A DNA stretch of 64,000 nt from Haliotis cracherodii (GCF_022045235.1 NW_027266264.1:67394001-67458000); one strand, 5' to 3'. Shown: positions 1 through 32,600, counted from the first letter of the stretch. The notes: generated by a model not told the origin, from the sequence alone. A program made the numbers and translations.

Positions 1-614
1 TCCTACAATATGATATAACATAAATATTCATTTAGATGACTTTCCAGCGCAAAACTAGATGAATTTATTCGTTCCTTTGTTGTATAATTGGTGAAATATG
101 AATACTTAACGTAAATCAGAATATGATATTTATTATTTATTATAGCTGACGTGATGTGATAGCATAATCAGTGTGCTTATGCTTAACAAGTGTTGTTAGT
201 TGCATCTATATTGCTAGTATTGTCAATCCCGAGTAGCTAAGGTGAAGACTCCTGCTGAAAACACCATACAGAAAGCAGGGATACTGTTAGTCGCGTGATC
301 CTCAGCTGGGTGGTCCAGCTCAGATTGCTTGTGGCTTAAAGCCCGTGTTTTAAGTGGCAGTTATTATCATTATTGTTAAACTTATATTTGATTAATACAT
401 ACATTTACATAAATATAAGTTGATACATTAATGATACGTATTATTTTAAATCAATAAATTGTTCTTTTAGCTATCCAGCTGAGAAGTATTTATTAGTAAC
501 ATTGCAAACTCATTCTAGTAAACAAGTCTACTATAGAATGTGTATTGCACGTATAGATTCCTCTCAAACTGTTTAAGGTTACGAGGACAAAGCTGCATTG
601 GCAGAGATAAATAC

Positions 615-3600
615 CCTTGTGCCTCTGTTAAACTTCCATTTAAAAGATGCAGCTGTCACCCAGTTAAACATCTTGTAGACAAAGTTTTGATAATCTTTGT
701 AGTCGTCGTTTGTCATAAATGCCTCCTTTACCATAGACCCAAAGCCGAAAAGGTGACGCTTGTGATCTATCTGTAGATAAAAGACATGGGATTCAATGTA
801 TTCTGAAACAAGAACAACCACTTAAAACAGTGAATGATGAAAACAGATGAAACCCGTACTTATTAGTTAATGGGAAATATAAAATTCATTTGTACGGATA
901 AATTGAATGTGTATGTCAAACCTTAATTTCAATATCAGCGGGGTTGAAAGATGGTGAATGGGTTACTCTGAAACACAGGACAGTGACATAAGAAAATGGA
1001 CAATGATACATTTCACACCATGACAAGGCACCTGCAAGTTATATAATTACTTATTTGTTTTGCTCATGAGTGAGTGATTTTTGTTCAACGTCACAGTAAG
1101 TTGTATTCCAACTATATCACGGCGACCTGTAAATAATCGAATCCTAATCAGTTCAATTAAGCGATAAAACCCTTTCAATAATCATAAGAAGTATCTGCTG
1201 AAATAAGAAATAAAAGCAGCGTCCCTTATTCGATTCTGACTATATCATAAGCATGTGTTCATATTTAACGATTTATGAATCACAATAAAAGAGTATTGAT
1301 ACCCGCTGTTTGCGGAAAAGGTGAACCTACCCGCCACAAACCACTGCCTGAAAACAACGACCAACATGATATGTCAGCTACGACACGGTGCCTGACCACC
1401 CGGTGCCTAAGTAAGTCAGATATGGGGCCTACTCTCACCGGGCATCTTCGCACTGTTTTTCGTACAACATTGGTTCTTTGATATAGTGTTGTTAAAAAGT
1501 GTTGCTTCCTTTATGTATCAATACTTTACTTGACGTCAATGATGTTTTTCCGAATCTTCTGAATCCTGGCATCTGCCTCGGCCTTCCAGTTAGGATCCTC
1601 ATCCACTTCCACCAGTGACGTGTCATCAATGAGGAAGTCTATGCCAGGAACTGGGCCTTGGAAATGTATGTAGGCCCTGCTCATATCTGTTGGTTGAGAT
1701 ATTTGTAAACGTACATTGCATGTGTGGCTTGTCAGTAACTCATTTATATTTCGTAATGATCACTACAATTGTTTGAGTGAGTGAGTGAGTGGGTATGGTT
1801 TTACGCCGCTGTATGCAATATTCCAGCAATATCACGGCGGGGGACGCCAGAAATGGGCTTCGAGAATCGAACCCGGGTCTTCGGCGTGACGAGCGAACGC
1901 CTTAACCACTAGTCTATCCGACCGCCAATTGTTTGAAGCAAAGCACTTAATGTTCAAGTAAAAAGTGACAGTTTTGTTGATAGTTTAGAACATGATGTGT
2001 TATACATTAGGGCAATTAGTTCAAGAAGTATAAAACTGAATTTCAAAATATAAACCCGCATATTCTTGCAGGCGCTATACACGTGTTGAATAAGGTGAAA
2101 AGCTGTGATCTGAAAGGATACAGGAATGGCAGAATCTCATGATTTGGGGTTGACTCACTTCTTAGAGGAGCGGTGAAATTTCCGTTCAAAGAAAACCATC
2201 CACTAGAAGACTTAACGTAAGGATGCTGACCAATGCCAGAGTAGTCGGTTTTGCCTGGAAGTAGAACAGATTTTAGACTTAGGCATTATCACATTAAGCT
2301 TACTTAAGTCCTACCGACCATATTGTGTGGCGACCCTATTGTGTTTCCTCCAAGTTGTTATCCCGTAACTCCAAATTCAATGTTATCTTTGAAAATATGT
2401 CAGCATTTCAGAGATTCATGTTTACCATGTGCTTTCATGGTATGTTTTTTGCAAATAGTGATCTTTTATCTAAACTGTTTTATAATTAAGTACTTTTAAT
2501 AGGCAATGGTGACAGTACAAATTCCTTTCGAAAATTCCTGTAGCTGCAGGTCCAGCCCTTGGTGTCTACATTCCACAACTTTTGAGGTACAATCCCGCAT
2601 GCTCTTTCTCCCAAGATATCAAAAGGCGTCATTCAATTCTTCCTCAGAAGTTGTTTGATAACATTTACAACATTCATAGTCTCGGGAAGGCTTGTAGGGA
2701 GACATTTCCAAATTTGACGCATCAGTGAAAAAAATAATGTCCGATGCTATTCCCTATTTTGACCATTTGTTACCGTGTTTTTTTCAGGGGAACAACTGAC
2801 TTCCCTTTGCATGTGTTTGTATCGGGTGGCACCGGTGGGACAGGATACGCTCACTTTTTCGCGCACAAAAGGTATCATAACAATTTCATAGTGATTCATA
2901 AACACATGCTCAAGATGTAGTCGGAGTCGTACAATCGACTATGAACAATGGGGGCACGGGTGGCCCAGTAGTATAAGGCGCCGCGATTCGCTGTGCAGTG
3001 GTGCGTCCCTTAGCACGTCAGAAACCTTTGATTGTAGGTTCGAACCCCGGTTCGCCCCGATTATGTTTCTAGGTTTGTCAGTACTATACCCGTTCCCATG
3101 GGTTTCTCCGGAGTGGTAAACGTCTGATACCTGCATCATACTTTCATAAGAAAGTAATGTCGAAAGCCACCACCTTCAACAGAGTCAGAATTTGAGATAT
3201 CTACAATGGGTATTGAATGTCACCATCAAAAGGCCGTTGGTGATATTAACAAATAACTCATCTGGAAGGTGTCATCCAAATTGACTGAGAAAGCTGCGAG
3301 GTACATGTATAAGAAAGATCCTTGTAGGCCAGCGAGATCGATATGTATAAATTAAGAACCGAGCAACATGTTTGGGAATAGTTTTAACAGTTATCAATTA
3401 ATTATCACCATGGTGTATTCTGTGCTAGTGGTGATCAAAGCAAGGCGCAAGCGCAATACGAGTTTGACTGTTGACTGTATTTGTTTTACGAGTGTACACA
3501 CCATCATCCGACCAGGTATATGCAATGTTCATCTTCATGGTCTGGAACATGGCCCCGGGGTGGTCGTTCAACTGCTTGATACTGGTCCTGTAGGCGTAGC

Positions 3601-5047
3601 GACCACCAGGCTTCAGGGGAATAACCTGGCCCGGACCTGCATCCCAAGTCTTTCTAAGAAAATAGCAGAATGAAAAATATTGAAATAATCTGACACTTCA
3701 TTATGATCTCATATTTCAACACCTGAAACAATAACATTTATAGGTAATATAGAAAAGCACTCGGGTAAGGATCGCATAAGGGTCATAGTTATATAGATAT
3801 ACATGTACGGTTCCACTTTTGATGGGGATAATCAGACATGTCATATATTTAAATGTACACATGATATATGAGAAAATTTTGTGTTAGGAAATATCTCTAT
3901 CAGAGGTGGAGAAGTATATTTCGATATTAAATCAACTAAACTGCTGAATAGGCAATAGTGATAGTAATCTTGTATAAATTGTGATACAGTGGTTCATGGT
4001 TGACATTCATGTGGATGGATTAGTTACATATGAATCTGGTCAAATTCATAACATAGATCAATCCATATATACAATGCAATAGAAAAGAAACGCAAAAGTA
4101 GTGAAAACACCACTTGTTGGCCTATGAATACATCGGGTTTTCATTTGCGTGCCAAATGAATAGCGAAAACATGCCACCACTAACTGAAGCCAACGCAACA
4201 ACGCCATCGGCCGACTGCAAACAGGAGAATTATCTTCAGCTGTAGCCAGCATTTTCCACGTCGCACCAATCGCCATTACAAGAGTGTGGAACCGTTGTCA
4301 GACACACAGGACAACACGTCACCATCCCAGATCAGGTAGACCACGTATCACTGCTAGAGCACAGGACAGATTCATACGTCTGCGTCACTTACTTGAAAGA
4401 ACCACCACGGCCAACTATAGAACTATGGTTTGCGTAGGATATTAGCGACAGTCCCAGGACTCAGGTAGTTAAATTTGTAGATTTATCACTGAGTGAGAAA
4501 GTATTCAGTTCGAGGTGTCATTTTGACGGACCTTTATCGTCGGCTGCGACGTCAATGGTGTCAAGGTCATAGAGTCAGTTAGTTTTAGACTCTGACGGTG
4601 GCCATACAAGATGACCTTCATCTTGAACATCTACTGTTTCATGTTTGCCATATGGAACCTGGGTCAATGACAATGATGTGTGCCAATTTAGGACAATCGA
4701 TTACCATCCAGCATCTGTTGATTACTTATAAAACATATAAAATTTACAGCTGAAAGCAGTTTGACATTATGAGGTCACTGTCAAACGTGAAGCACATTTC
4801 AGGTGTGATGTCGCTGATTGCTAAAAGCGGCATAAACCCATACACACTGATCTACCTACCTGCCAGTAACTTTCAGGGCACGGCTGCCCCCATGGACGTC
4901 GTCTGTGATTATGTCGAGTTTGATTCCAGATCCTCCCCAATTGTCAGAGAGGTCTAGACTCTCAAATCCTGGGTTTTTCAATAACTCGAGTGCAAACACC
5001 GATTTTATTACTACTATCAGCAGAACAAGGTAGTCACGGGGACTCAT
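615..5047 (-). CDS. GH10 endo-xylanase-like protein with N-terminal CBM4/22, paralogue A (5' part; continues off the left edge)
   Basis: GT-AG exons with consistent phase: 4860-5047, 3502-3653, 2159-2254, 1530-1686, 922-967, 615-770. Signal peptide MSPRDYLVLLIVVIKSVFA; CBM start ELLKNPGFES; FQGPVPGIDFLIDD; WKAEADARIQKIRK; GH10 start HLFGFGS...MFNWVTAASFKW. Exons 2-6 are the same sizes as in paralogue B (152/96/157/46/156 nt). Confidence 0.92.
1777..1925 (-). mobile_element. tRNA-derived SINE, family A
   Basis: tRNA-like head, core GATATTGCTGGAATATTGC, (ACTC)n tail, TSD caattgtttga. Confidence 0.85.
2949..3146 (+). mobile_element. SINE family D (3'-truncated)
   Basis: Matches the reverse complement of 41100-41302. 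Confidence 0.75.
4171..4570 (+). mobile_element. Degraded Tc1 transposase fragment in intron 1 of paralogue A
   Basis: MPPLTEA..NAIGRLQTG..., PRSGRPRIT, QDRFIRLRHL, with frameshifts. Confidence 0.7.
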
Positions 5048-7797: not shown

Positions 7798-8723
7798 AGA
7801 TGCGAATACACAGGTGTAGGGTGTTATTTGTCATGTTTTTAAATATTCATTGTTTATTCTTGCGTGGTGTTGCGAGGGTGGCTGAAACATTCTGAGCCCC
7901 ACCATGATGGACCACGTTGATGTATTGGATTACTATGATGAAATTCTGTAACATTAATCATGTTGCAACACTCTCTATATAAAATTGCCCAAGATGGCAG
8001 AGATATTGCCGATGCGATGTTAAATTATAAATGGGGCAGTAACATCAGGAGTTTATGAATTTAGATGAAGGACCCACAGAAAATTAAATTAATTATGTCA
8101 GTGTTAATATATTCTTACGTGGTGTTGCGAGGGTGACTGAATCAATCTGAGCCTAACTATGATGGACCGAGTCGGTGGAGTGAGCCGTTATTTATTTTTC
8201 AACAGGAACCCTGCTGATGTGCATTGCTAAATGGTCGTAGTTCGAGTGGACATTAATATTGTTATCGTTTGGTATGTATGAAATGATGTGTTTAGTAAAA
8301 CTGTATTCCACATGTATGTTGTCATAGTTTATTCAAAACATAGAGACCATTAGCCCAGGTTACATGTTTTAAGATGGTTGCATTTGATGATAGCACAATC
8401 ATATTAATTTCATAAAATGTACGTCGCAATGCTTGGTATTTATTACACATGAGTATATGTACGAAATGACAGTCTACAGAAGTTACATAAAGTTACATGT
8501 AAAGTTTCTAAAGATTATATCAAAAGACGAAATCCGTCAAAGTCTCCGTTTACAGATGTAAACATCAGATTGTGAAAAATAGTTATATTCTGACAAAAAC
8601 TATACAGCACCTTCTGATTCACACCATATTCAAGTAATTACCTCACTTAATATGTTTTTATTAATATTAGGGACAATATATTGCTTCATATAAAAAAATA
8701 AAGTGAGAAGATAAAAACGTGCG

Positions 8724-8729
8724 TTTATT
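8724..8729 (-). promoter_or_regulatory. Candidate polyadenylation signal (AATAAA) of paralogue B
   Basis: AATAAA on the minus strand ~50 nt after the stop codon. Confidence 0.5.
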
Positions 8730-8778
8730 GCTGCTTTCTTTAGTATGATTGAAACACAGGAATATGAAAGCACCGACT

Positions 8779-11700
8779 CTAACCGATGATAGCCCCACCA
8801 TGATCATCAAGTGAACAACACGTGGCCACGGCCAACACCCCTTGTTCGCCAGTAAACTTATCTTCACCATTCATGGCAATGCAGAATTCTCCTTTAGCTT
8901 GCGTGCCTAGAAAACAGATGAACAGACAGGGCTAGGATGTATGGAATACCTAAACATAACAGATTGGTCATGTTTAATTAGCAGTTGTATGAAGAAATAC
9001 TCATTCTGTGTTTTCAATGTGGAGCTATGTTATGTGTAGATGCAAACACAGAATGTGGAAGCAAACGCCATGTGTATGCTTCCAATGTTAAATCTAGTGC
9101 AATTAATTCTACAGGTACACTAACTATTCATTGAAAACATAGTATGATTTATATTTCCATTCTACCCGAACAAAATACAACGCCAAAGCCTTTGGTTGTT
9201 AGGATGATAGTGAGTGAAGTAGCATAGGTTGATACTAGTGTTTTGAGGAGGTTGCCGACTTGAAGGAATCGCAGCCATTTCAACGTTACTGTGTGCGATA
9301 GTGAAGCGTCAATTTCAGTTGTATCTCTGAAACTTGAAATATACTCTATAGGTTAACTTGCGCACTGCCATAATAACTTAAGCATTCGAGGAACTCGGCA
9401 TTTTGTAATACATATTTTCTGGCATCAAAGACGGAAGTAAAATCGACTGCTTCAATAAGAGATTATTGTAATTTGAAAACACTCGTTGACAATTCAGAAT
9501 CGAGGTTTATTTTAAAAGTCTTGGTCAAATAAAACGTACGTGTAGTTTTTCTTTAATGCATATGTTATTTTTCATAATAATGACATAGAAATTTGTGTTT
9601 CTGTACTTTCAGGATTTGATGCATATGTAAACCCGCGGTATCCAGGGCGGTGAATCTTCATGGCTTTATAAGGAGAATAAATGTGTATATAAATGCTTCT
9701 CACTAGGATGATTCATATGAGTAGCATGAACTATATTATATGATATCCAAGTTTCTAAAAGAAAACAAATACCTCCAATAAATGCGCCCGCTGACTTTCC
9801 AAAGTCCGCTCGGACGCTACAGCCAAACAGCACAGTTCCCGCATCACAGGCTACAGATGCCTTCTCTCCCTTCTGGAGACTGCTCGGTTTGGACACCAGC
9901 GTCTTACAGGACAGTTTGGGGGCAGTACAACAGGCAGCATAAGACCAGGTACCTTCATTTCAAGTTACATCTTTAGCTAGATTTCGCTATATTGTGGTTG
10001 GATACCAGTCTTGCATTGATGTCTACCATAAAACGTGAGTGCATTAAACCGGTCCCATTGAATAAAAATCATATTAATATCCTGATCATGCAATTTGAAA
10101 GGATGCTCGTAAAACACTTTCAGATATGTTCAGGGTTTTGTTTCTTAAATCAGACATTTCCGATAACATTGTTTCTTGACCTTTTAAAGGACATTAAAGT
10201 AACTTAAAATTTCAACGTTACAGTAACTGGTTCGATAATATCACACTGACCTACAGTAGTGCCTTCATTTGAGGCAACACATCCCTTTTGATTGTCCGAT
10301 GGGAAGGATCCTATCATCTCAGAGTCCCATGTCCAGGCCGTACAGCCTAAATGAGAGAGAGTTATCACATCAATGCTGTTATTAGATAATATACCATTGA
10401 CAATTTGTCACGAACTCATGGTGACCAGAAACATAGTTCGACTTATCCGGGGTTCGAAACATCCGATTCAACCTTATTTGACTCAGTTGGGTCCATGTGT
10501 ATCCTCGCCTTCTCCCGTCTCCCCACAACGAGTAAGGACGTCTAAATCAACATCACCTAATGATGCTAATACACGCCGTAGTTACAACAGATTAACGACA
10601 ATACTCATCATTCACACTTAATTCAGGGGGCGATTCAAATACGAATCTGTCAAACATTTTACACTGTGTAAGGGTATAACAGGTGTCAAGTACCTCATGT
10701 GTTTTGTAAGTTGTAAATGTTAGGTGGTCACAAGTGCACCATGAGAGCAGTGTTGTGTTATCTCTGCCATGATAAGATGTAATATGCAAATATAGTGCTG
10801 ACTGCTGTCAACTCACCTGTGGCAATTTCGGAGTTCAAACAAGTTGTTTCCACTCTCGCATCCACAGACTTGGCAGATGGTCCTGATCCCCTGTAGGTAC
10901 ACTTGATGTTCTTCGTCTTACAGCATCGTGCAACAGCCTGGAGACCTGGTTACGATTCGATATTTATGAAGAATTGGTCAGACAGGTTTTCTTCAAAACA
11001 TTCAGTCGCTTTAATTAAACAACCAAACCCTTCCTACTCATTTGCAGTATTATTTTATTTGCACAAAGTCTTGGAGTAATCATGATACTATTGTAAATAA
11101 AAGCGACAAACGCTAAACTTTTTCCATATTAATTATATTGATTTGTTAAATTAGCAGATGGCCCTGCACTTCTGTAGGTGCACTTTAATTACTTGGTCCT
11201 AGAATATCGGCAACAGCTAGAAGACCTGATATGTTGAGGTGGATTATAAGTCACGCAACTTAAATATATATCCACCTCTGGGTCGTTTCCAAACTTGTAC
11301 TTAGGATATTTAATGAAATTGACCATTTTATTGCCACAGGACAACAGCTACTCTGAATTAGACCTTCGCCCGCGGTTTTGAAAGCAAAGCTGTCTAAGGG
11401 GTAATTTCTACAATCGTCATGATGTCAAAGAGATTCCTAAGTATTTTTCGATTGTGTCTTTTTATTTTATTACAAGATAAATGCGAAAGATCTGAACAAA
11501 TTGAGTATCCATAATTTGTTTGAAAAGGGTATGGCATAAACTCATTCATAGTGCAGAGAAGTTGATTATATTGGTATTGCTTAAAGGAACTGTTCCTTTT
11601 CTTCATACCATCGATTCCTTTAAGTCAGCCCAATACATCAGTTGCTATCCGTATAACCATGTCAGAAAGAGTTCACAGGTATTAATTTAAATTAAAAAAA

Positions 11701-14700
11701 GGATTGTATTATAAGCATGCGTTTATGAAAAACGATCAAATAATGATGACACCCGGTGTTCGCGAAAAGATGAGCGTTTCCTGAACTACCGTTGGCACTC
11801 GTCACAAATACATGCAATTTCAATTAGAAAATAGCTTCGTTTTTAAAGCTTTACTGTGGTCTTGAATTGAACCCTGATCAAAGAACTTTTGAGCAAGTCA
11901 TGTGGCGTTCTTTGAATATCATGCTCACCTTCTTTTGATCGCCAACCATTTACCGCTTTACAAGCCACCCGACCATTTTTAACCTCAATTTCCTCGCCAT
12001 CACGATACCACTCTCCGTCCTGAAGAAAACCTGATATTATTCTTGAGAAGAAAATTGGTTAACTACAGTTTTCAATTTCACCTGTGTTGATGTTTGAATT
12101 ATCCAAATATCTATAACAACGAGTACACTACATGTAAACATGAAACACTTAGTAAAATATTCTTCTACCTTTTCCAGAACAGAGAACTGATATACATCAC
12201 GTCAACTGTCTGTGAAGAAACATATTGTGATTAAATATTTTGAGTTTCTTTTATATATTTTTTGGTTTACCCGCCGCAGGTCCTAAATTTTAGAAAACGA
12301 GGAAAACACATACAACACCAGTTTGAATTAGTTGCTCATTTTTATCATTTGAATGAAGAACAATATTGTTTTCAAAGAAACGTCTAAATACAAAAGTTGT
12401 TAATATAACTTGTCAATGCAAGAGAATAACCAGCCTATGATCTTCTGCTGAAACATATTCCACTTGGCGTGAAGGGAAAAGGGCTGTGGAAATTATATGA
12501 ATTGACCACTGACAATCAGTGATAACACCAGGTGTTCGCGAAAAGTGCAAGCCTCTCCTGCCCTAAGCTATCTGCAGAAAAGTCCTATTAATTATACTCA
12601 GACACACATACTAATAGTTTTATGAAGAAAATCTAAAAATATATAATAAGAATAAAGAGTTGATTTTGAAACAAACCAACCTTGAATTTTGTATATCACA
12701 CCGTACAAGCCAAACAGAAAGGCTGAATTTTATCTGGACTTAGAAGACCACCTTTGTGAAACTAAAGTGCAGGAAAAGGGGCTGGCAAACCAAGCATCAC
12801 ATTCAGAGAAAATATCGTCGGCATAATTAGAAAACAACAACATTCAATCCATCAATCGGACATATTTGGGGAGTTGGGTTTAATGCTGCTTGGATCAGTG
12901 GTTTAATTATATCAAGGCCTAAACTTATTGATGATAAGTACCTGATGATAACCTGAACAGCCGGTCATCACTTCATCACTCTCGCAGTAAGCATAAGTAG
13001 GCTTGTCATCGCCGACGTCAGACACTGCGGACCAGCGGGTGACGCACTGAATGTCGGTGTTATTAGCATCTGATGACATGTGACCAACAATATGCTGGTT
13101 GTTATGGGAGACTTGGATAGCATGTGTCACGTGCACGAATGGATCAATAGTTGTTGGGAGTGTCACTTGATCTGAAAAGTTAAGGAATAAATGTATTACT
13201 TTCGTTTGTTTGTGTTCTAACGACTAATTCATCAATAGTCCAGATATATGACAACAATCACCCCAAACATTTTTACTCCGTTTGGCATTAGTTTTGGATT
13301 TATGAAAGTAATTTCAAGAAAAAAATTCGGACTCTTGATGCCCGTCCTCTGGGGACTAAAGAAATTGAAATTGCACGAGCTTTAAAAAATGACGAAAATT
13401 TGCCTTGAATGAAAATAAGAGTTTATCCACCCCTTCACATAACATCTTCCTTAAAAGAAAATGTCCATGCATTATGTCACCAAAATAATTATATTGCAAT
13501 CATGACATATAGGACTTGTCAATACATTGTGAATTTATACACCCAAATGTTGCAATAGTCTCTTACGGCCATCGCCACTGATGTCCAGGTTGAGTGTGGC
13601 ATCTGCCTTCCCCAGGTGGAATTCCTGGTACATAACGGGCTTCCCCTTGTAGTTTACTACAATGTCATAGTCTCCCTGGAAGCCATTCACGGAGAAGGAC
13701 GATCCATCTGAGAGATTCTTAGCTACATGTGTTGACCACTCCTTCTGGACCAGATCAAAGTAACGTTGACCAGCAGCGTTCACCTGCAAGTATATACACC
13801 CTTATTTCAATGTGAATCTCCTTTCTGTCCAGTGTCAATTTTATGAGTGAGTGAGCTGGGTTTTACGCCGTTTTGTTATGAAGTATTTCAATAACGAAAT
13901 TATAATTTTGTTTTATAGATTTAAGTTGTGTTTAGATCGCTTTTGGAAATAGTCCAAGTTCGTTGGTCTTCCTTCCCCATGACGAGCGAACACGTTAACT
14001 GCTTGGCTTACCCGACAGCCGTTATGGTTTTCACTTGGTACAATGTGTGAGTCACCGGCTGCTTTGTTGTCTTATCTGCATTGGGTGGGTGGGGGGGGGG
14101 GGGGGGGGGGGGGGTGGGGGGGGGGGGGCGGTCGTTAGATACTTTATCAGTGTGTATCTTATTTATCCTTGGCTTTGCCCCTGTTTCATTGTTTGTATAA
14201 TGACATATTAATGTAAGCTAATTTTCTTAAGTTTGGTCAATCAAAAATTTCATTATATTTTAACACTATATTATAAGAACTCATAACTGTTCATTGGCAA
14301 TGGAGTGGTGGGGTAGCCTAGTGGTTAAAGCATTCGATCGTCACGTCGTAGGCCCGGGTTCAATTCCCCACATGGGTACAATGTGTGAAGGCAATTGTTC
14401 CCCGCGGTGATATTGCTGGAATAGAAGCGAGGTAAACCATACTCATTCAGTCATTAGCATCGTTAGAAAACGTTTACATAAAAATGTAAGAATGTGATTC
14501 GTGCCCTCTTAGTGTTTCAGTACCTGTCATCGGCTTACTATACCTTGTGGCTGCCATGGCGGTGGTCGTGGCAGGCATGACAAGTTTATAAACTTATAAA
14601 CTGCAAGTAGGTTAAGGTCATGGCATTATAAGTAACGCCACGGGATGTGCTGGAGCTCACGCCTCACGTAGTGTTTAGCCACGTAGGATGGACTAAATTT

Positions 14701-17700
14701 TGATATCTATTCCGAACCATTTGGTCATGATGTGTATATTTCGGCCCATTTGCTTATGATTTTGTAGTTGCTCCCTTGCGTCACGATGTGTACCCAGCTA
14801 AGTCTCAGTGTACTGTGTAATACTTCTTGTAGTGGTAAGTAACTATATGCCACTATATCTGATCTAATCTAATCTAGTTCATGCAATCGACCATTGTCTG
14901 TATTATGGGCCTACGGCCTTCTTACTGAATAAACTATCTGTCTGTATATCTAACCTAATATTTGCCTCAGTATCTAGACAATCAGTTATTGTAATAAAGT
15001 GCTATGCTCAGTTGTTATATTATTTAAGAATATCATAAAAGCTCTTGTTAATTAATCTTACAAAGAAGTTATATCCATTGATGAGTGCGGCGTAAGGGCT
15101 TTTCATTTGATGATCCCAGAAGCCCCAGAATATGACGCCTTCCACTGCTGGGTGACTGAAGTAGGTTCTGAGAGCCCAGTCGTACCAGTCCGCCCGGACA
15201 TTCTCGTCATGGTGCACCAGGTCCATCTCGGTGATCCACAGAGGCAGTCCAACAGATCCCAGGTTGTCCAAACGTCTCTGCAATATCATGTTGCCAACAT
15301 TTTTATACCAGTACTTCAACCGTCAACTACTATTTCTGCAGTAACATAAAGAGCAACATCAGGGCGATTGCTCAATCTCATTACTATGTACTGTTCTGTG
15401 TACATACAGCTTATGAAAGCATAAGCATTTCCTTTCAGTAGCGGTCATTGTGAAAGGTGGAAGTTATATTTACCATTGAACTGTTGAATGGGACTAACTA
15501 CTGACAATTAATTAAACATAAGGGAGGCAAGGCCTACTTTCAGAAGTGTTGGATCTGGAGGTGTGTAGTCTCTGAAGTGACTCTGGAGACCAAGGCCTCC
15601 CAGTCCAACATTAGCCTTTTTGAACTCTTTAGCCTGGGCAACGTAAGCCTGGAAATGAATATTACATATATAAGCAACAGCAAAATAAAACGTTAAATGC
15701 TTCAACTACAGATTGTTGGTCGGGCAATTTTGTTGAGAATGGCGATAGTTGGTATTGCACGACTATATGGAAGATACTGAATATTTGCGTAATGGTGTTG
15801 TGGTTATGGTGATTATTATGTGACATAAATCGCATAAATGATGTTCTGTGAACAGGCACATAGCAGGCCACCATCATAATGTGAAGTCTACGAAATGTAT
15901 TATCAACATACATCAGTGACGGCTCCCACGGCAACAACGTCGTAGTCATTGAGGAAGAGCTTGGGCACGGGATCAGCCTTGTGGACCATATCGTAGATCT
16001 TCTCCGAGTACAGTGCATCACCTGTTTTCTCTTCATATAACTGACCATGGAGAAGTTCGTTGTTCACGTCCCAGTGACCCAGTCTAACGCATAATTTAAG
16101 ACATATACTTTCAAATATATTGTTTGAATCTTCTATGTTTGTCCATTTATCAAATATGAATAAACATGTGAGTATAATTGGAATTGTGTGTTGATTGTAA
16201 ATTACCCTTTTACCATGACCATTCTAAACATGTACATGGCGATAGATACAGTTCACTTACTGTCCCTTTGTGATGCCGGTCATATATTTGACTCTCTCTG
16301 CAATGGCTGCTTTCAACATTGTCCCGTTTAAGGCTTCTACCCAACTGGGTGAGTTACCTGGAACTCCCCAGAACATGTTGTGTCCTCGAACTTTCATGCT
16401 GTAATATATGAACTGTTATAAATGTCCTAGACAAGTTATGTAATGCATTTGAATAATGGTGAAATAACAGTTTTAGTTGTAGTTTTGAATTCCGTTAAAT
16501 GCATCCAAAGTTAGTCCACATTGTAAGATACGTACCCACGTTGATTAAGCACCTTCACGGCATCTGTCGCAACTGTGTAGTCAGGTTTATCCTGGAAAGG
16601 ATGTTTGACAACAGTCATGTGTTTTTAGATATTTAGTCACATTGTGTTTTGCAATAATATTGTTTTTGTATGGTAGTTCTTCTTCGTGAAATTACTTTGC
16701 GTGTTGTAAAATCTATAATTGCAAAAGTTTCGATTTTCCTTGATGAACACATAAAATGAAGATATGAACAGTATATACCTTGGTACCTCTGTTGTACTTC
16801 CACTTGAAGGATCCTGCTGTCACCCAGTTGAACATAGTATAGACAAAGTTTTGATACTCTTTGTAGCCGTCGTTTATCATATATTCCTCATTTATTACTG
16901 ACCCAAATCCAAACAGATGTCTTTTGTGGTCAATCTGTAAATCAGAGAGGTTCTTAAAAAATGTCTTAAAGTACGTATGTCACCGGAGAAATTCATGGAC
17001 TCAGGAATGTACAACTGATTTTTTTCTTTTGTGGAATACAGTAAACTACGGTAAGGACGAACTCAAAAGAACCACTAATTTTAGTTCGTTGTAGACGTAG
17101 TTCGTTATATGCATACATACAGCATAACTACAGCAAATAGTCGGGACAAAAACGTAAGTTCGTTATATCCGTCAGTTCGTTATAAGCGTGTTCGTTATAA
17201 ACGTAGTTTACTGTATCTCATACGCTTACGACCATAACAGGAGTCTCATAGATACATACAAAGAAGCTGTATATTTATATTAAAAACATATGAAGTACAA
17301 GTGTATTCTGCAGGGATGTCATTTCCTTTATCCATCATGAACAGAATTATAATATCTAACCTTAACTTCAATATCAGCAGGGTTGAATGATGATGAATGT
17401 GTCACTCTGTAAAACACAATGATCCATATGTATTATAGACACATCATCGTTCATGGCACTAACGTGAAATAGAAGTTCTGAGAAAAATGTGTTATATTGA
17501 AGTGAGTATATATAGGTTTTCACGCACTGCGCCCATGTTGGGAATCGAACCCGAGTCATCGACGTGACGAGCGAAGGCTTTACCCACTAGGCTACCCGAC
17601 CGCCGTGTTATATTGTAACACACAGTATCAATTAAAGTCGTGTCTTAACATACACACCATGTCAAAAATACTAATAGGATGCTGGAACTTGATTAGTCGT

Positions 17701-20700
17701 TACGTTTTGGAAAAAAATATATAGAATTCATATTTTTCTAACAACTGTCACTTCGTGAAAACTCATCTTTTGCTTCAGGCCACTTGGTGAAATTTGGCCT
17801 ATTTATGTAACAGTATGTATATGATGTTTCTTGAGATTGTTGCAATTGTTTTACATTATACAGTTGTTCCGTTAAGAGAAGGAACCATTACTTGAGAACT
17901 GACATTTAAGTTTACCGTTTGGTAGAATTACCTTCAAAAGCCACATGACGTGCCTACATGAATAAGGCGTTTCTTCGTTATAATGCGTTATCAAGTAAAA
18001 TATACATTGAGTGAATAGGGTATGACAAAAGACCTATTACATGGATTATTACAAACGTACGCGTCCCGCCTGTTTCGTGTATGTCCGGAGCGAAACGTAG
18101 TACACATGTAATAATTCATAAGCAATAGACGATAGAAAGAAGGCAGCCCTACTGAACATTGATGTTATTTTTCCTAATCTTCTGTATTCTAGCATCTGCC
18201 TCGGCCTTCCAGCTCATGTCCTCGTCCACCGTCTGGAGAGAAGCGTCGTCAACGATGAAGTCGATTCCTGGATCTGGGCCTTGGAAGTACAGGTTGGCCT
18301 TGCTGGTGTCTGGTGGTGTATGTGTAAATATACATATTCATGTACATGTAAACATCAAAATGGAAAGCTTTATAAATGGTTAGATATGCATAAAGATTCA
18401 GAGTGACAAAACGCTCTCCACAAGTCTGTATGACAAAAAGGATGACTTCAACTTTTCATAGTCAACTTTCCTTCCTTGCCTTTGCTGTCTATATTTCACA
18501 ACTGTTTAGGTACAATCAAGCATGCTTTTTCTTCCAAGATTTCAAATAGCGTCATACAACTCTTGCTCGGAAGTTGTTTTTTTATCAAGGTGACAACATT
18601 CCAGGCCTCAGTAAAGCTTTTCAAATTATTTGTGGAGGACATTTCTAAATGTGACGCATAAGTGAGAGAAATTATGTCGATGCAATTCCCTATTTTGACT
18701 TGTACCATATGTTCCCGTGTTTATTCAGGTGAAAAATTGACTTGCCTTTGCATGTGGGTCAGGATACGCACACCTGGTATCATCACTGTTTGAAAGTGAT
18801 TCATAACTCATGCTCGTGATATAGTCGGATTCGTACAATGGACTCTGTTTTTGCAGAGATTTGTCGCTTATATTTATTTTTATAACAGTAACAGCACAAA
18901 ATTTAGTTCAACCCTTTTTTCAGAATGGACAGTTGTAGTACCTTGTCTTCCCAACATGAAATCAAATAGTGTGAACAACCCTGCACGGTTAAACCCACAA
19001 GGAGCATTTAGTTAAGCCTCTTCGCTAAAGTGAAACCATTCAACGTGTTAGATATTTCAAGTACCGTTTTAAGGAGTATATGTATATGCTAAAAAACGGC
19101 ACATCCCTTGAACTTACTGGATATAGAATGTTCTGTCATTGTAGATATGTTGACATTGAAGAGGGGGGTAAATTTATTCGATGACGCTTATTATTTGTCG
19201 ACATTTGCAGCCGACAACATTTTCAGTGATCTCATAAAATCTCATTATAGTTTGATAGCGATCAAAATACAATAAAAACCAATCAAGAATAGTTTGATTA
19301 ACCTGAAAATATGGAACTAGACACCAGATGATTCCGTCAGTTCAGGACATTATGTATAGTAACTAAATACATTATTGCAACCTCACCACCATACTGGCAC
19401 CTCAAGAACGACCTCACACAATTGTACGCCTGTAGGCATTCAAAGAGGACTCTTAGGCATGACGTGCTAATGTATAAACCAGTAGGCTACCCAACAGCCC
19501 CAACAAAGAATAATGAATGTCATTGTTGAATACTTGAATTGTCTGGGCTTACTTCTTAATGGAGCGGTGAAATCCCCGTCGAGGGTGAACCATCCATTGG
19601 CAGACTGAACAAATGGATGTTGAGCGATGTCGTAATAATCCGTTTTACCTGTGTATGATAAAAATCATCATTGGGCTAGGTATGTCTGTATCGTGTCTCA
19701 TAAAATTGTTAATATTTACTGAATACAAATCATGTTTTTCGTAAAAATTCGCGAAAATCTTGTGTTATCGCTGATTTTCACTGAACCATAAGATAATTGT
19801 CTTTCCTCATTCCGCCCGCCACCGCCCCTATTTGTTTACTCTTTTCCCCTACCTACCCTACATTTTGAAAAAAATCCGCAATCTATTTGAAACTAGAATA
19901 TTATTTTTGAAGTTTCTCAACCCACAGACCTGAATTTTAGGGCAAAACATTCGTAAACAAAAATAAGGAGAAAAAGTCATCAGGATGAGTGATCGCAGCT
20001 TTGGATCGAATCTCATGTCATGTCACGGCATGTCAGCTTGATGTGGGAGGTAACCCTAAGCCATGCAGATCTTAGACGTTTACTACTTTGGTGAAACCTG
20101 TGAGCACAGGTATAGTGCTGACGAACCCGGGAATATAATCAGGGCGAATCCGGCATTGGAGCCCAAGATGATATGTTTCAGGTATGCCCACGGGGAATCG
20201 ACACTGCACAGCTAATTGCGGGACCTTAGACAAATGAGACAATCGAGGTAAAATAGTGAGAACAGAGACAGTTATATCTTATTATAGTACACACCGTCAT
20301 CAGCCCATGTATATGCAATGGTGATCTTGATGGTCTGGAACAACGTCCCTGGGTGATCATTCAGCTGTTTAACACTGGAAGTATAGGCATAACGGCCACC
20401 AGGCTGTATGGGAACATCCTGCGCAGGGCCTTGGTAGGACTGTGTTCTGAAACGAATATTACTAATTTGCTATATGCTTCATATATGTGTTGATATCGAT
20501 GCTAAACAACGATCCCAGCAGGGATTTCTTGTATATGTATGATCTTGAAAACTATTATCACTAGTTCGTACATAACACGATTGTTTGGTTAACATTGCAG
20601 AACGTATGTACTATACTATACTGAACAGAACCACATCAACATACATTTACATCAAGCTGTGACCAGTTTAGGTAATTCCACTTCTAGAACAGCATGAAAC

Positions 20701-23354
20701 AACTGGTGTAGTTTTCTATCAATACAATATACCATCAGATTAATAAACTAATGAAACCAGCATCTATTAACTGATCATCTGTCCATATGTTTGTTAATGT
20801 AATGCTTATGCAGTGCCATGAAGGATCAGTTGAGAGTCCAGATCCTTTAAAAGCTTTACGTGGCTTTCGTTGGTATATTATACTTTTCATACATTATCTT
20901 TGTGTTTTAAAACAATACACTGGTTCAGAGCCTTCAACTTAAAAAAGAAAGTTTCATAATATTGATAAGGTGACATCAAACAATGATCACATTTCAGCGC
21001 AACTGATTTGATTATTGTTTTCTTTACAACCATTTTAAGGCGGAAATAGAAAAGGGTACCTTTTCACCTTTTTGTCTTTGCATGTTAACATTTCTTTATG
21101 TACAGGTATATGCATTTACACATCATGGGGAACCGATATCGGTTCAGATTAGGTTCTCAGCATACCATGCATAACGAAAAATAAATAAAGCAACAAAATC
21201 CTTTCCATTTCTAATAGAAATGCCTGCTTAAAGCAGAGTCGAAAGCACGATTCCGACTATATCATGAACATGTGTATATGAATCACTATCAAATAATGAT
21301 GATACCAGGTGTTCGCAAAGAGGTCGCCGTATCCTGCCCAACCGATGGCACCCGTCACAAACACATGCAAAGGCAAGTCAATTGTTAACCTGCATAAACA
21401 CGGGAACACATGGTCAACATAGTCAACATAGGTAATTGCATTGTACATCTTTTTTTGTCACTGATGCGTCAAATTTGGAAATGCGATCCACATGTCTACC
21501 ATAAAACGTTTTGAATGCTTTACTGAGGCCTTGAATGTTGTAACCTTGATCAAACAATTTCTGAGCAAGAGATGTATGACGCTCTTTGAAATCTTGGTAG
21601 AAAGAGCATGTTCGATTGTATCTCAAACGTTGTGCAATGTGAAAGCTGCAATGTGGAGCTGCTGGAATTTGGCTCGACATGAAGGGAACTTTTACTATTG
21701 GAAAGTTGAAGTCATCCCACTTGTCATACAGTCTTCTTGTGCAGTGTGTTTTGCATCTCTGAATGTTTATTCATAGATCTAGATATGAAACATAACGTCT
21801 CTCAATAAGCAGATTGACAAAACAATATATTTCACGAACTTGAAATTCTTACTGATGAATTTATATGGTAAGGGTTTTGTCGTTTTTATTGACTATAAAT
21901 ATCTATAATCTACGTAAAAATGGACGACCTAGTCCAAATGTCTCCACATTTATTCCACATATAATTTTTTCCATTCCAGATACTGAACCTTATGATAACA
22001 AAATCAAGACTATCTAGCCTTATCTATGACTATTGCCTTTCCCTAAGCTTTCAAAATCATATACATTACATATTTAACTATGATATATGTCATAAGACTT
22101 TTTAATGTAAATTATCAGCAACCAGTGATCATACAATGTATTGTGGTAATTTTGCTACACTCTGTCCGCTGTATATGTTGCGCTGTAATTGCGTAAATCA
22201 CTACAAGCAAATGTTGTGCAACACAATGTTTGTTTTGAAGGATAGGGTGGGATAGGGTCCGGATTCCCTATTTTGAAATGTTGAAGTTGCAGTGAACATT
22301 TAAATACTGGGATGAAAATTTTCAAACATGTTTAAATGTACGACAACGAGCTTTTCTTTCTTTCGCCCACTTGCAAGTTTTGGACAGCTAGCATGCTGAA
22401 CTATATAACAATGTTTGATAGGCATTACTTACAAGTTGACGGATGACAAAGTGGAGATAACTTATGGATAACAAGGTTTGGCGGTATAAGGATTTATACC
22501 AAAATGTCGCCTTTAAGTAAATAAAGAAGTTCTTTATCGATAAATTATCTCTACTTTTATAACAATGGCTAATATTAGTGAACTAAAAGAGAAAATCGGG
22601 TGCCCGTCCTTCACTTAAGATGCGTGTTTTACTCCATGACGGTAAGTCTTTATGTACATCTGCTATGAAAATCAGCTTAAAGAGTTGTTCCTTTTTCAAC
22701 CTCAAAACACAGCCTGTTTGACACATTTTAGTCTTAAATAATGAAGTCCTAAACATGAATGGCTGGAAATGAGCTAATTTTAGTTTCACAATGATTTGGA
22801 CATTTTTTCATCATTTCTGAACTAAAGCATATCCCGTGGATCAGTCAGGTTCCCTCTCCTGTCCCTTGTCCTTTCTCAACATGGAATGAAATTGTGTAAC
22901 CAACCCTGGTCGGGTAACCCACAAGGGACATTCAATGAAGCCTCACCCCCAAAGTATTCATATAGTTATCCCCTTCAGAGAAGAGTTCAAGGACTACTTG
23001 TAATTATTGTAGATATGGACATTAAAACAGGACATTTGGATCACTCTCAAATCGTATGGTTAGAACATGTATTATATCCCATTAATTTGATCTTTAATAC
23101 GTGTATGTATGTGATGAGATACACATATCATGTGACGTCCAGATAAAACAGATGACTTCTGTGGTAATTTACCTTCCAGATACTTTGACAGCATGAGTTC
23201 CTCCATGGACGTCATCAGTGATACTAACAAGGTTGAAGCCCCATCCTCCCCAGTTGCCCGACAGATCTGGACTCTCGAATCCTGGGTTTTTCAGCAGCTC
23301 GAGTCCAAATGCACTCTGGACAATAAGTAGAGCTAGGACACTGCCTCGAACCAT
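8779..23354 (-). CDS. Secreted CBM4/22 + GH10 xylanase-like protein with C-terminal PCSK9-like triple Cys-rich domain, paralogue B (complete, ~850 aa)
   Basis: 18 exons: 23173-23354, 20295-20446, 19553-19648, 18153-18309, 17361-17406, 16779-16934, 16536-16591, 16261-16398, 15912-16083, 15538-15648, 15062-15277, 13567-13783, 12942-13171, 11929-12019, 10817-10945, 10251-10346, 9773-9952, 8779-8906. Total 2553 nt, in frame, TAG stop. GH10 motifs: VRGHNMFW, WDVNNE (acid/base), LFLNDY, GLGLQSH, LWITEMD (nucleophile), IFWGFWD. Confidence 0.93.
14083..14130. repeat. Poly-G tract
   Basis: ~45 nt, almost pure G. A second tract lies at ~58535-58558. Confidence 0.9.
14302..14450 (+). mobile_element. 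tRNA-derived SINE, family A
   Basis: A/B-box head GGGTAGCCTAGTGGTTAAAGC...GGGTTCAATTCCC; imperfect TSD tcatt(g/a)gca. Confidence 0.8.
17039..17213. mobile_element. Tc1/pogo-type MITE
   Basis: TA flanks; TIR CAGTAAACTACG / CGTAGTTTACTG; internal TTCGTTAT repeats. Confidence 0.8.
17502..17605 (-). mobile_element. SINE family A (internally deleted)
   Basis: Head and tail present; TSD gtgttatattg. Confidence 0.75.
18390..18845 (+). mobile_element. Penelope-like retroelement 3' fragment
   Basis: YDKKDDFNF...VNFP remnant and the same 3' UTR. Confidence 0.6.
21236..21870 (-). mobile_element. Penelope-like retroelement 3' fragment
   Basis: Decayed translation LYDKWDDFNFPIV...RYNRTCSFYQDFKERH...KLFDQGY...AFKTFYGRH, resembling the RT C-terminal region of Penelope-like elements, plus a conserved 3' UTR. 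Related copies at ~2520-2935, 18390-18845 and 26330-26610. Confidence 0.65.
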
Positions 23355-28619: not shown

Positions 28620-29262
28620 GTGGTGAGTGTGTCTGAGGGGTGTGTGTCAGTGTGGGTGAGATTGTGTGTATGTTGGTGAGTGAGTTTGTATGTATATGTG
28701 GCTGGGTGAGAGTATGAGCGTGTATGTTTGTTAGTGAGTGTGTATGTATGTGTGTGTGTGAGTGAGTGTGTGTGTATGTTTGTTGGTGAGTGTTTGTGTG
28801 TATGTTTATGGGTGAGTGTGTGTGTGTGTATGTTTGTGAGTGTGTGTGCATGTTTGTGAGTGTGTATGTAGGGGTGTCGGAGGGGTGTGTGTATGTTTTT
28901 GAGTGAGTTTGTTTGAATGTGTGTGGGTGAGTGTGTATGTATGTTTGTGGATGAGTGAGTGTGTGTATGTTTGTTAGTGAGAATGTGTGTGTGTATGTGT
29001 ATGTTTGCGAATGAGTGTGTGTATGTGTTTGTTTGNNNNNNNNNNNNNNNNNNNNNNNNNNNNNNNNNNNNNNNNNNNNNNNNNNNNNNNNNNNNNNNNN
29101 NNNNNNNNNNNNNNNNNNNNNNNNNNNNNNNNNNNNNNNNNNNNNNNNNNNNNNNNNNNNNNNNNNNNNNNNNNNNNNNNNNNNGTGTATGTTCGTGTGT
29201 GTGCACAGGCGTGTGTGTGTGTGTGTGTGTGTGTGCGTGTATGTTCGTGTGTGTGCGCAGGC

Positions 29263-29642: not shown

Positions 29643-32600
29643 TCAGCAGTTGACTTCTTCGTAGTCGGAACTACCTGAACAGTGCCGAACTTCTCGGCGA
29701 TTACCATCCCCCATTGTGACCCGGCTACAGGGCATCTCATATCCATCTGCGATGACTGAATAGTACGGTTCCTCCCAATCACACGGTTCCAGGTGTATTC
29801 CTGGTCGATAGTGAACCACTGGTTGATCAACAGGACTCAGATAACTTGCTTCGTTCTCATTACACGCGCAGGACGTCCTGAAAAAGTATGGATTACAAAC
29901 GAATATTATGTCTATTAAGTTAAACGTCAAAGGACAAACGTAGCTGCAACAATGCACGCCTCTATTACCCTATACGCCACGTGGACTAAAGTACACTACA
30001 CGTTGGTAGTGATGGGTTCATATTCTTGAATATGACACCGTTTGACTTTTTGTTCAGCTTGCTAAATATGCGCCGCTAATCCTAGGTGTGAACAAGACAA
30101 ATATGTATATTTAGGTACCTTCTGAAGAAAGAAATAGATCCAGAAACGATGACGATCGCGAAAATAGCACAAACAAATAGAAGTGCAGTAACATTCCAGC
30201 TGGAATGGACCTTTTCTGTAACAGAAAAAAAGAAGTAAAAAATCGCATTGTTGTTAAACAAACACAAGTCAATGTGACTGATACTGTTGTGGATGCTTGC
30301 CGTGCTTACATTACTTAGGTGCTGTTACAAGTCTCAACATGAACTTTAAGTTTAAGTCGGAATCGTACAATGAATAATGGTTTCTCATGATTATAAAAAT
30401 TCTTTAGTGTCTTTAAGTTTAAGAACTCTTCCACTTGATCCATTTTGACTATTTTCTGTCTAAATGAGACAATTAGTCGTGTCGGGGATTCAACTTAATA
30501 GCATTATATGTACATCTAAATCATGTTATGTTATAAAAGTCGTGAAGGGGTGGTAGATTTCCGTGATTCATACATGGGAATTTGATTTGAAACCAGTGCC
30601 GTCAGCCAATACGTTATCGGTAGTATGGGGTGTTTGTACCTGTGCACGAATCCCCTTTCCATCCGCTCCTACAGGACATGCAAACTCCGCCCTCCTTGTG
30701 ACATACTCTACAGTTACCAGGACACGGATGAGAGCAGTCATCCATGTACACTCCCTCCTCGCAACCCACTGTGCAGCTACCGTTCTTATCACACAGTGTC
30801 CCCAAACATCCCTGGCTGCAGTTCCTTACACACTCTGGGCCGTACAAACCCGGGTCACATTCAGTACACGCTCCTGTGGATCTGTTACACCTTTGACAGC
30901 CTCGAGGACACGAGTGTTCACAGTAGGAACCCCATCTTCCCTCCGAGCAATCAGTGATGCAAGTAATACTATCTGTATTCACATCTAACTTGTGACACAT
31001 TTGTTGAGGACAGTCTGCACTGCAATTGTTCTCACAATGTCTTCCAAATGTGTTAAGTGTGCATCCCTGCACACAGAGGGCACTTGTCTGCTCACATATT
31101 TCACCACGACATCCCGGAGAACACGTTGCATTACAATGAGCACCATAGTAGCCTGCTTCGCATCCATTGGTACAAACCCCTGTCAGTTTGTCACAGTCAC
31201 GTCTACAGTTCTGGCATCTACCGTCACAAAACAAACCAAAGTATTTATTTGTACACAGGCATGCACCATCGACATCACACTTGTTCTGTGAACACCCTTC
31301 ACTGCAAAACTGACGACAACGAGTCCCGTACCTGCCATTCCGGCAAGCGGTACACGTGCCGGTGTCCTGGTGACAAGCAGTGCAGTTCCTCTGTGGACAT
31401 TCATCAACGCATCTGTCTCCCATGTAGCCATCCAGACAGGGTGTGCAGGCTCCAGTAAGCACATGACAACGATTGTTTAAACAATGCTCTGAACATTTGT
31501 GGATACAAGTAGGGCCGTAATATCCGACTTTGCATCCTCCACTGCAGTTTCCACCGCTTTGATGACATTGATTGTTTTTACAATTCGTTGGACATCTTTT
31601 CAAACAATTCGGACCGTAGTACCCAACCTTGCATCCGCCCTTGCACCTTCCACCATGCTGATGACAGCGGTTGTGTTGACATCCATGGCTACAATGATCT
31701 CGGCAAAATCCACCAGAAAATCCTGCCTCGCACCCGGAGGAACACCTTCCGTCGCGATCGTTACATTTCCCAAGCAGACACGTGGCGCCACAGCTGTTCT
31801 CACACTGTTGCCCCCAAGTTTTCGACGCACAGGTGCGCACGCATTGGTTATCTTTGCATTGGATGTGCGCACATTTCTCACAGTAACACTGGCTGTCACG
31901 GACACATTGCTTATCACATCGTTCACCGTGAAGTCCATTCTCACACCTCTCTCGACGACATGCGTAGATGCACGTTTCAAGGCTCTCTGTAAGGTTAGGA
32001 TACTGGGTTAGGTGCTAATTACTGTATTTTGCAATTAAACTCATCCCGTAATCACATCAGTAAACAAATATTACCGTATTTCCTCCATTAGACGCCTAGA
32101 CGTATACTAATTTCGCGCAAGCCGGTGACCCTGCGTGTATCAGAGGCCCGGCGTCTATTCTGTTTTATGCTGGCTCAGTGACTCACTACCTTACCAAAGC
32201 CCAAATTATGCAGTCATCTAAAGGGTACATTTGCGGGAAATAGTCATTCATTTGTTAATCACCAGCATTTCACACCATTCGAGACCCGGCGTCTAATAGA
32301 GACCCGGCTTCTATTTTTTGGACAGAACATATGACCCTGCGTCTATTCGAGGCCGGCGTGTGTTGGAGGTTCGGCGTCTAATAGAGGAAGTAGGTATTTA
32401 ACGTCGTCACAAGAGGTGAATATGAAAGTGTGTCACTTAAGTTGTATGGAAGAATTATTGCTCAGTTTGTTCTATAAATCTACTCACATCACGTACAGTA
32501 CTTGCCAAAAGTAATGGATTTGGTTTGGTTTGTTGTTTAACTCCACACGCAGCAATATTCGAGCTACATGGTAGCGGTCTGTAAATAATCGAGTCTGGAC

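Follow-up and report, generated by a model that had tools for sequence, protein, structure and literature searches.

In the black abalone Haliotis cracherodii, a gene on the minus strand of a 64,000-nucleotide stretch of DNA (GCF_022045235.1 NW_027266264.1:67394001-67458000, called the window in its full length) joins a glycosidase of family GH10 to a C-terminal tail whose true homology to the PCSK9 C-terminal domain is almost certain. The coding span occupies positions 8779 to 23354 and is divided into 18 exons, with the ATG at 23354 and the stop codon at 8781-8779. Its product is letter for letter the RefSeq entry XP_071098715.1 (Haliotis cracherodii, 850 aa, "uncharacterized protein"), and this database record was the query in every analysis that called for a contiguous protein. 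A fusion of this kind had been proposed in an initial annotation of the window, and below we set out the evidence for the homology and for the gene, the spread of the domain and of the fusion, and the roles that the tail may have.

Homology of the tail to the PCSK9 C-terminal domain

Among the Pfam models for this domain, PCSK9_C1 matches aa 604-684 and a second stretch (E 1.1e-20, 74.1 bits, cut-off 31.3) and PCSK9_C3 matches aa 759-839 (E 4.1e-9, 37.0 bits, cut-off 26.7), so that two of the three models find the tail, while PCSK9_C2 gives no match at E <= 0.1. In XP_071098840.1, the product of a tandem paralogue, PCSK9_C2 reaches 17.7 bits, below its cut-off of 26.1. The middle module is nevertheless picked up by a profile of exon 17 and by whole-domain alignments. 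Taken one exon at a time, the Pfam matches are collinear but sub-threshold (E 1e-3 to 4e-2). A phmmer search against all PDB sequences recovers human PCSK9 at E 1e-19, with aa 606-840 aligned to 454-680, which is the whole C-terminal domain. Moreover, the exon-17 profile, which has 59 columns and was built from exon 17 and the paralogous exons of the same genome, by itself matches PDB entries of PCSK9 (E 2.4e-20) with three separate stretches that correspond to the three modules, and among 1.8 billion representatives it recovers proteins composed of Inhibitor_I9, Peptidase_S8 and PCSK9_C1/C2/C3. In a BLASTP alignment with one of these proteins, identity is 29% over 246 columns (E 2e-21) and the cysteines are in register.

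Structure prediction leads to the same conclusion. From an alignment of 36 sequences, AlphaFold2 gives a model with a mean predicted local distance difference test (pLDDT) score of 90 and a predicted template modelling (pTM) score of 0.83, and its tail is all beta with pLDDT values of 81-95. In a Foldseek-independent search of 48,161 PDB representatives, the tail model (604-842) superimposes on 7anq_A, a complete PCSK9 C-terminal domain, with a Z score of 27.6 and a root-mean-square deviation (rmsd) of 2.0 Å over 216 of 222 residues, and on 4k8r_B with a Z score of 27.0; these two entries rank just after the GH10 enzymes and above every other barrel. In this predicted structure the tail has the fold of the PCSK9 domain, three six-stranded sandwiches that pack with pseudo-threefold symmetry. 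With the full model, the best 50 rows of Foldseek against the PDB are all GH10 or derived barrels, and the ESM Atlas, searched with the tail, returns nothing beyond the mollusc cluster to which the tail belongs and bacterial rows below 0.9. The match to the PCSK9 domain that the initial annotation had drawn from motifs is borne out by profile, sequence and fold.

The cysteines agree in detail. The protein has 18 of them, all in the tail and all invariant in 36 homologues, and they form the three six-Cys modules described in the initial annotation. The gaps between successive cysteines are 19/8/24/17/0 residues in the first module (M1), 19/8/20/16/0 in the second (M2) and 19/8/23/20/0 in the third (M3), and all three conform to the published module motif C-X17-19-C-X8-9-C-X18-25-C-X11-23-CC (PMC9113161). 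Each module is presumably locked by three disulfides. The tail has the same three tandem modules as the PCSK9 domain, in the same mutual arrangement and with six cysteines each, at about 29-30% identity over the whole domain. In both cases the domain is C-terminal on a secreted protein with a hydrolase fold, from which a hinge or linker separates it. The two also differ: the abalone tail follows CBM_4_9-GH10, whereas the PCSK9 domain follows an I9 prodomain and an S8 subtilase, and the abalone middle module, unlike that of the PCSK9 kind, is unseen by the Pfam C2 model. In addition, the tail is Cys-rich rather than His-rich, with a single histidine in aa 604-842, whereas the human domain has 14, nine of them in M2 (PMC9113161).

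The tail had also been called resistin-like. Each PCSK9 module resembles one protomer of resistin, and the three modules its trimer (PMC9113161, citing Hampton 2007). However, resistin/RELM proteins are trimers of chains, whereas the abalone tail is one chain with three modules, and the Pfam Resistin model gives no match at E <= 0.1 in XP_071098715.1, P0246 or XP_071098840.1. The label therefore draws solely on the published structural likeness of the PCSK9 modules.

Gene structure, catalytic part and transcripts

When XP_071098715.1 is threaded onto the window DNA, each of the 17 introns has a single GT..AG solution, in agreement with the 18 exons and 850 aa first predicted. A signal peptide (aa 1-17) may be deduced from the hydrophobic N-terminus; it is encoded, together with the beta-sandwich of CBM_4_9 type (aa 19-157; Pfam E 1.9e-19, 70.8 bits, cut-off 25.9), by exons 1-4, which span 18153..23354 (exon 1, 23354-23173; exon 2, 20446-20295; exon 3, 19648-19553; exon 4, 18309-18153). 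Exons 4-11, within 15062..18309, encode the GH10 (beta/alpha)8 barrel, recognized by its Pfam match, its catalytic glutamates and its fold. Downstream of exon 4 they lie at 17406-17361 (exon 5), 16934-16779 (exon 6), 16591-16536 (exon 7), 16398-16261 (exon 8), 16083-15912 (exon 9), 15648-15538 (exon 10) and 15277-15062 (exon 11, the last exon of the GH10 core). Glyco_hydro_10 covers aa 220-479 (E 6.9e-37, 127.8 bits, cut-off 22.1), and the individual exons match this profile collinearly. Glu337 in the motif WDVNNE and Glu439 in ITEMD are both invariant in 36 homologues. By what is established for GH10, we take Glu337 (NE motif, strand 4) to be the acid/base and Glu439 (TE.D motif, strand 7) the nucleophile.

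Among solved structures, the catalytic part is closest to Bacillus XynA, 7d88 (E 1.8e-71, 34% identity), onto which the GH10 model superimposes with a Z score of 46.0 and an rmsd of 2.1 Å over 361 residues (7d88_A). This match spans residues 172-562 by sequence and 175-557 of the model by structure, and since it includes exon 12 (13783-13567, aa 495-566), that exon encodes the C-terminal beta-sandwich extension of a GH10 subfamily and no separate new domain. Bacillus sp. XynA (PDB 7d88/7d89) likewise has an N-terminal helix and a C-terminal beta-sandwich extension, but it is bacterial and has neither a CBM_4_9 module nor a PCSK9-type tail; its substrates are xylan and cellulosic substrates (PMC6408826). 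Closer to home, tail-less molluscan GH10s of about 570 aa have the same layout of CBM_4_9 and GH10 and end after the GH10 extension. The characterized multifunctional "EGX" cellulase-xylanases of Ampullaria crossean/Pomacea presumably belong to this type.

The remaining exons encode the linker and the tail. On the minus strand between 13223 and 8782 there are six open pieces that carry the Cys pattern, each flanked by AG and GT. Exon 13 (13171-12942) encodes a His-rich linker at 13171-13062 and then, from about 13061, the first half of M1 (PCSK9_C1 profile positions 4-41); exon 14 (12019-11929) encodes the middle of M1 (positions 47-69); exon 15 (10945-10817) the end of M1 with its CC pair and the start of M2; exon 16 (10346-10251) the middle of M2; exon 17 (9952-9773) the end of M2 with its CC and the first two-thirds of M3 (PCSK9_C3 profile positions 2-47); and exon 18 (8906-8779) completes M3, adds an 11-residue tail and ends in the stop codon. 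The domain had originally been placed at 8779-13046. Its left limit is right, whereas 13046 is the first Cys codon of exon 13, which starts 125 bases upstream, at 13171, and encodes the linker first. The linker itself (aa 563-603), encoded by the end of exon 12 and by 13171-13062, is partly conserved and has six histidines in 41 residues. The histidines lacking in the tail are located just ahead of it, and aa 593-599 form a short, confident beta-strand in the AlphaFold2 model. The 3' untranslated region covers at least 8300..8778, as spliced contigs extend through and past it.

Transcript evidence comes from four public runs with four organism labels, whose contigs were aligned on window positions 8300-14000 and whose reads were placed at 90% likeness. 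These runs are very likely RNA, judging from the spliced form at high depth: contig depth is in the hundreds to thousands over exons and about zero over introns. The four come from a set of small runs that contain 12-21% of the words of positions 8700-14000, close to the fraction that is exon. All four runs carry the six joints 13171|13567, 12018|12941, 10943|11927, 10345|10816, 9950|10249 and 8905|9772. Once cut offsets are allowed for, these equal exactly the predicted junctions (13567|13171, 12942|12019, 11929|10945, 10817|10346, 10251|9952 and 9773|8906), with CT..AC on the plus strand corresponding to GT..AG on the minus strand. One contig of 609 bases covers exons 15 to 18 and another covers exons 14 to 13, while a 763-base contig covers exons 13 and 12 and continues into what can be read as the last part of exon 11. 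Because a contig joins exon 12 both to exon 13 and to the last GH10 exon, the tail lies in the same transcript as GH10. These joints, together with the translations of exons 12-18, all of which occur exactly and contiguously in XP_071098715.1, confirm that the tail is in frame and co-transcribed with the CBM-GH10 part, as had been proposed.

One may argue that the gene model wrongly joins GH10 exons to exons 13-18 of a neighbour, or to a relic that is not expressed. Chimeric gene models are a general risk, and a minor junction, 13567->10946, skips exons 13 and 14 and would shift the frame. However, the contigs of the four runs join exons 11-12-13 and 13-14-15-16-17-18 in frame at GT..AG sites, the same architecture is predicted independently in more than 15 species, and the tail is under purifying selection (see below); taken together, these observations refute an annotation artefact for practical purposes and leave it a negligible probability.

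Several other features of the transcripts were seen. The minor junction runs from exon 12 to one base upstream of exon 15, at an acceptor that would be non-canonical, with depths of 230 versus 4089, 94 versus 2087 and 8 versus 122 in three runs. The frameshift leads to a stop after nine codons and to a predicted tail-less product of about 576 aa; the junction could instead derive from a paralogue, given the 90% likeness at which reads were placed. Within intron 13, positions 12311-12692 show high contig depth and many loose ends into unlike sequence in all four runs, which has the look of an interspersed repeat that is expressed from within the intron and forms no part of the gene. At 8465 in the 3' untranslated region, contigs of two runs have a 20-base insertion relative to the assembly, and many single-base differences separate the contigs of the various organism labels.

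Distribution of the domain and of the fusion

The PCSK9 C-terminal domain, or Cys/His-rich domain (CHRD), has been called unique to PCSK9 in work on the evolution of the PCSK family (PMC8553125). At the database level this fails, since the domain is found in other contexts. With the exon-17 profile, the three-module domain is recovered in abalone after PAN and Sushi repeats, in a hemichordate after Kringles, and in hemichordates after a subtilase. It also follows C-type lectin, Kringle, F5/8C and CUB domains, and it stands alone in secreted proteins of 220-350 aa, among them hemichordate "PCSK9-like" proteins of 220-317 aa. The initial annotation, in which the domain was known from a subtilisin-like convertase, was therefore too narrow. 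Most of the stand-alone proteins share 33-38% identity with the abalone tail along its full length (E down to 1e-37), and both these and the invertebrate Sushi/PAN/Kringle proteins have secreted-type architectures with no glycosidase and were found only as automatic annotations. Whether on S8, GH10, Sushi/PAN, Kringle or lectin/CUB proteins or alone, the domain is always C-terminal. The search also returned P0003/P0155 (626 aa), which consist only of repeated PCSK9_C modules; their sources are a contig of a JGI metagenome and the transcriptome of a marine microbial eukaryote (MMETSP), where contamination may play a part.

The fusion of this domain to GH10 is likewise widespread and is already present in sequence databases through automatic annotation. 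The four-domain architecture CBM_4_9, GH10, PCSK9_C1 and PCSK9_C3 is precomputed in the gastropods Haliotis asinina, H. rufescens, H. rubra, Aplysia, Biomphalaria, Bulinus, Lymnaea, Bradybaena, Pomacea, Babylonia, Patella and Elysia, in the bivalves Mactra and Mya, in the chiton Liolophura and in the brachiopod Lingula. Such proteins carry names like "endo-1,4-beta-xylanase 3-like", and dozens of orthologues in RefSeq and UniRef have PF18459/PF18463 precomputed, so that the fusion is not new as a database object. By contrast, no published description of a CBM-GH10-PCSK9C fusion was found in the literature that could be searched, including reports on PCSK9_C outside vertebrates, on PF18459/PF18463 and on the domain architecture of mollusc GH10s, which agrees with the earlier statement that no characterized protein of this kind is known.

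A quick maximum-likelihood tree was computed from GH10 columns only, with a short search and rooted on bacterial outgroups with long branches. In this tree, a single starred clade (99) takes in 37 of the 39 tail-bearing GH10s, which come from gastropods, bivalves and a chiton, and the tail-less class of about 570 aa occupies two other clades. Lingula and one chiton protein lie outside the tail-bearing clade on long branches. The topology is suggestive of one old fusion, followed by losses or truncated gene models, and from these sequences the fusion would have been kept since before the split of chitons, bivalves and gastropods. Furthermore, comparison with the tandem paralogue gives a ratio of nonsynonymous to synonymous substitution rates (dN/dS) of 0.18 in the tail and of 0.12 in the GH10 exons, which indicates that the tail is under purifying selection and is functional rather than decaying.

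The genome of H. cracherodii holds further copies, as seen in a scan by exon-level profile matches, whose counts are lower bounds (C1 denotes the window's contig). At several sites, PCSK9_C exon matches lie a few kilobases downstream of GH10 exon matches, whereas none of 14 control genomes has a PCSK9_C exon match. The tandem paralogue (XP_071098840.1, 850 aa, same architecture) has its 5' part on the minus strand at 1..5047 of the window, with its start at 5047, and its tail exons just below the window start, at C1:67386093-67389463; its tail is about 78% identical in exon 17. Some 47 Mb away, at C1:20396001-20406000, a copy with near-identical tail exons (98% in exon 17, dS 0.08) is a recent duplicate; its product, XP_071099144.1 (867 aa), groups with the H. 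rufescens orthologue on the GH10 tree. At least four more GH10-PCSK9_C paralogues are present on both strands of C1:59.07-59.13 Mb, where a locus at the edge of the cluster shows tail exons only, and one more is found at C67:61.34 Mb. In the paralogues at C1:59 Mb and on C67, the equivalent of exon 17 alone exceeds the PCSK9_C3 cut-off (37-41 bits versus 26.7), and by this sequence measure their third modules are closer to vertebrate PCSK9 than that of the window's gene. No PCSK9_C neighbour was seen at the GH10 loci on C19, C45 and C27, and tail-less GH10 paralogues persist in genomes that hold tail-bearing ones. Within about 500 kb of a PCSK9_C match in this genome, none of 13 Peptidase_S8 exon matches was found, at the exon level and again as a lower bound.

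Three-module PCSK9_C exons with no GH10 nearby were observed at C1:87.89, C1:70.48, C1:59.07 and C1:58.27 Mb; the copy at 70.48 Mb has a Sushi-like exon upstream, matching an H. rufescens protein with PAN, Sushi and PCSK9_C. In the window itself, upstream of the GH10 gene, 30617-32014 on the minus strand is a 466-codon open frame dense with Cys repeats of EGF/laminin type, and between this frame and the gene there are a CA/TG-type microsatellite and an N run at 29036-29184.

Possible roles of the tail

The reading that we favour, at somewhat better than even probability as a whole, is that of a secreted digestive GH10 enzyme with the tail as a non-catalytic binding or targeting module. The protein runs from the predicted signal peptide through the CBM_4_9-type sandwich, the GH10 barrel and the XynA-like extension to a His-rich linker of about 40 residues and a PCSK9-type domain of 240 residues. 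Judging from its family, the enzyme would be secreted into the digestive tract and, by the retaining GH10 mechanism, would cleave beta-glycans from the cell walls of algae, namely beta-1,4-xylan or its relatives. The tail would then be a protease-resistant module on a linker that holds the enzyme on a partner, at a first guess the surface of food particles or of the gut lining, with its glycans or glycoproteins, and would thus act as the functional equivalent of a carbohydrate-binding module. Molluscan GH10s are hepatopancreas enzymes with a digestive role (PMC7560691, PMC5322654), and the PCSK9 domain is a partner-binding module (PMC9113161). By analogy with these two cases and with the C-terminal placement of the domain on varied extracellular proteins, binding or targeting is the probable function of the tail.

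The nature of the ligand is a separate matter. That the tail follows a linker on a glycosidase speaks for carbohydrate binding, and that it is homologous to PCSK9 speaks for a protein as partner, perhaps with a part in trafficking. We regard a carbohydrate specifically as less likely than not. Several points weigh against the binding-module reading as a whole. The known ligands of the PCSK9 domain are proteins, not glycans, and the abalone protein already has an N-terminal CBM_4_9. In addition, the high pTM score hints that the domains may be packed rather than tethered. Moreover, nine of the 46 rows in the tail-bearing clade have no tail. Truncated gene models may account for some of these rows, whereas any real loss would mean that the tail is dispensable. 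A complex prediction of the core (18-562) with the tail (604-842), which scored 0.00 in a run that left the alignment unused, speaks neither for nor against docking.

The initial annotation had put forward two candidate roles, a new carbohydrate-binding module and an uptake tag. In the second of these the tail would be a docking or trafficking tag, which binds a cell-surface protein of digestive-gland cells and routes the enzyme with its bound substrate to endo-lysosomes, or sorts it into secretory granules. Molluscan digestion is partly intracellular, which would suit such a tag, as would the structure model, in which all three modules keep the PCSK9 arrangement, and the occurrence of the domain behind a secreted subtilase in hemichordates. 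In PCSK9, routing to lysosomes requires the domain, whose binding partners include CAP1, annexin A2 and MHC-I (PMC9113161). However, identity to PCSK9 is only about 29%, and with one histidine against 14 in human a conserved acid-triggered switch is unlikely, so we consider this alternative unlikely overall. For the same reason, namely that it lacks the histidines of vertebrate PCSK9, the tail is unlikely to be a pH sensor.

Alternatively, the tail might bind no external ligand, its nine disulfides serving to protect the enzyme from gut proteases or the domain packing onto the catalytic core. That all cysteines of the protein are in the tail fits such a structural role, and so do the pTM of 0.83 and the short ordered linker strand at 593-599. 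Stand-alone versions of the domain and its use in unrelated extracellular architectures are, however, hard to square with stabilizing one enzyme, and GH10 paralogues do without it in the same genomes; a purely structural role is thus improbable. A broader evolutionary proposal is likewise improbable. The CHRD could be an ancient mobile extracellular module of bilaterians that ancestrally docked secreted hydrolases of the digestive-gland or liver lineage onto a conserved cell-surface or matrix partner, the hydrolase being GH10 in molluscs and brachiopods and a subtilase in deuterostomes.

Our claim is a modest one, as the architecture is already visible in databases through automatic annotation and it is the description that was not found in the literature. 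Nevertheless, the decisive partner of PCSK9's Cys/His-rich domain is still debated (PMC9113161), and the abalone fusion would offer a comparative handle on it: a shuffled three-module domain that is under purifying selection on a glycosidase and would work without the histidines. The near absence of histidine (1 versus 14) argues, from sequence comparison, against carrying the pH-dependent behaviour of PCSK9 over to the tail. If the tail binds glycans, it would represent a new family of carbohydrate-binding modules of animal origin; if it binds a protein, the enzyme would be an unusual case of a targeted digestive glycosidase. Finally, should the ancestral docking role prove true, the abalone fusions would provide a histidine-free, non-LDLR setting in which to find CHRD ligands of the "protein X" class.

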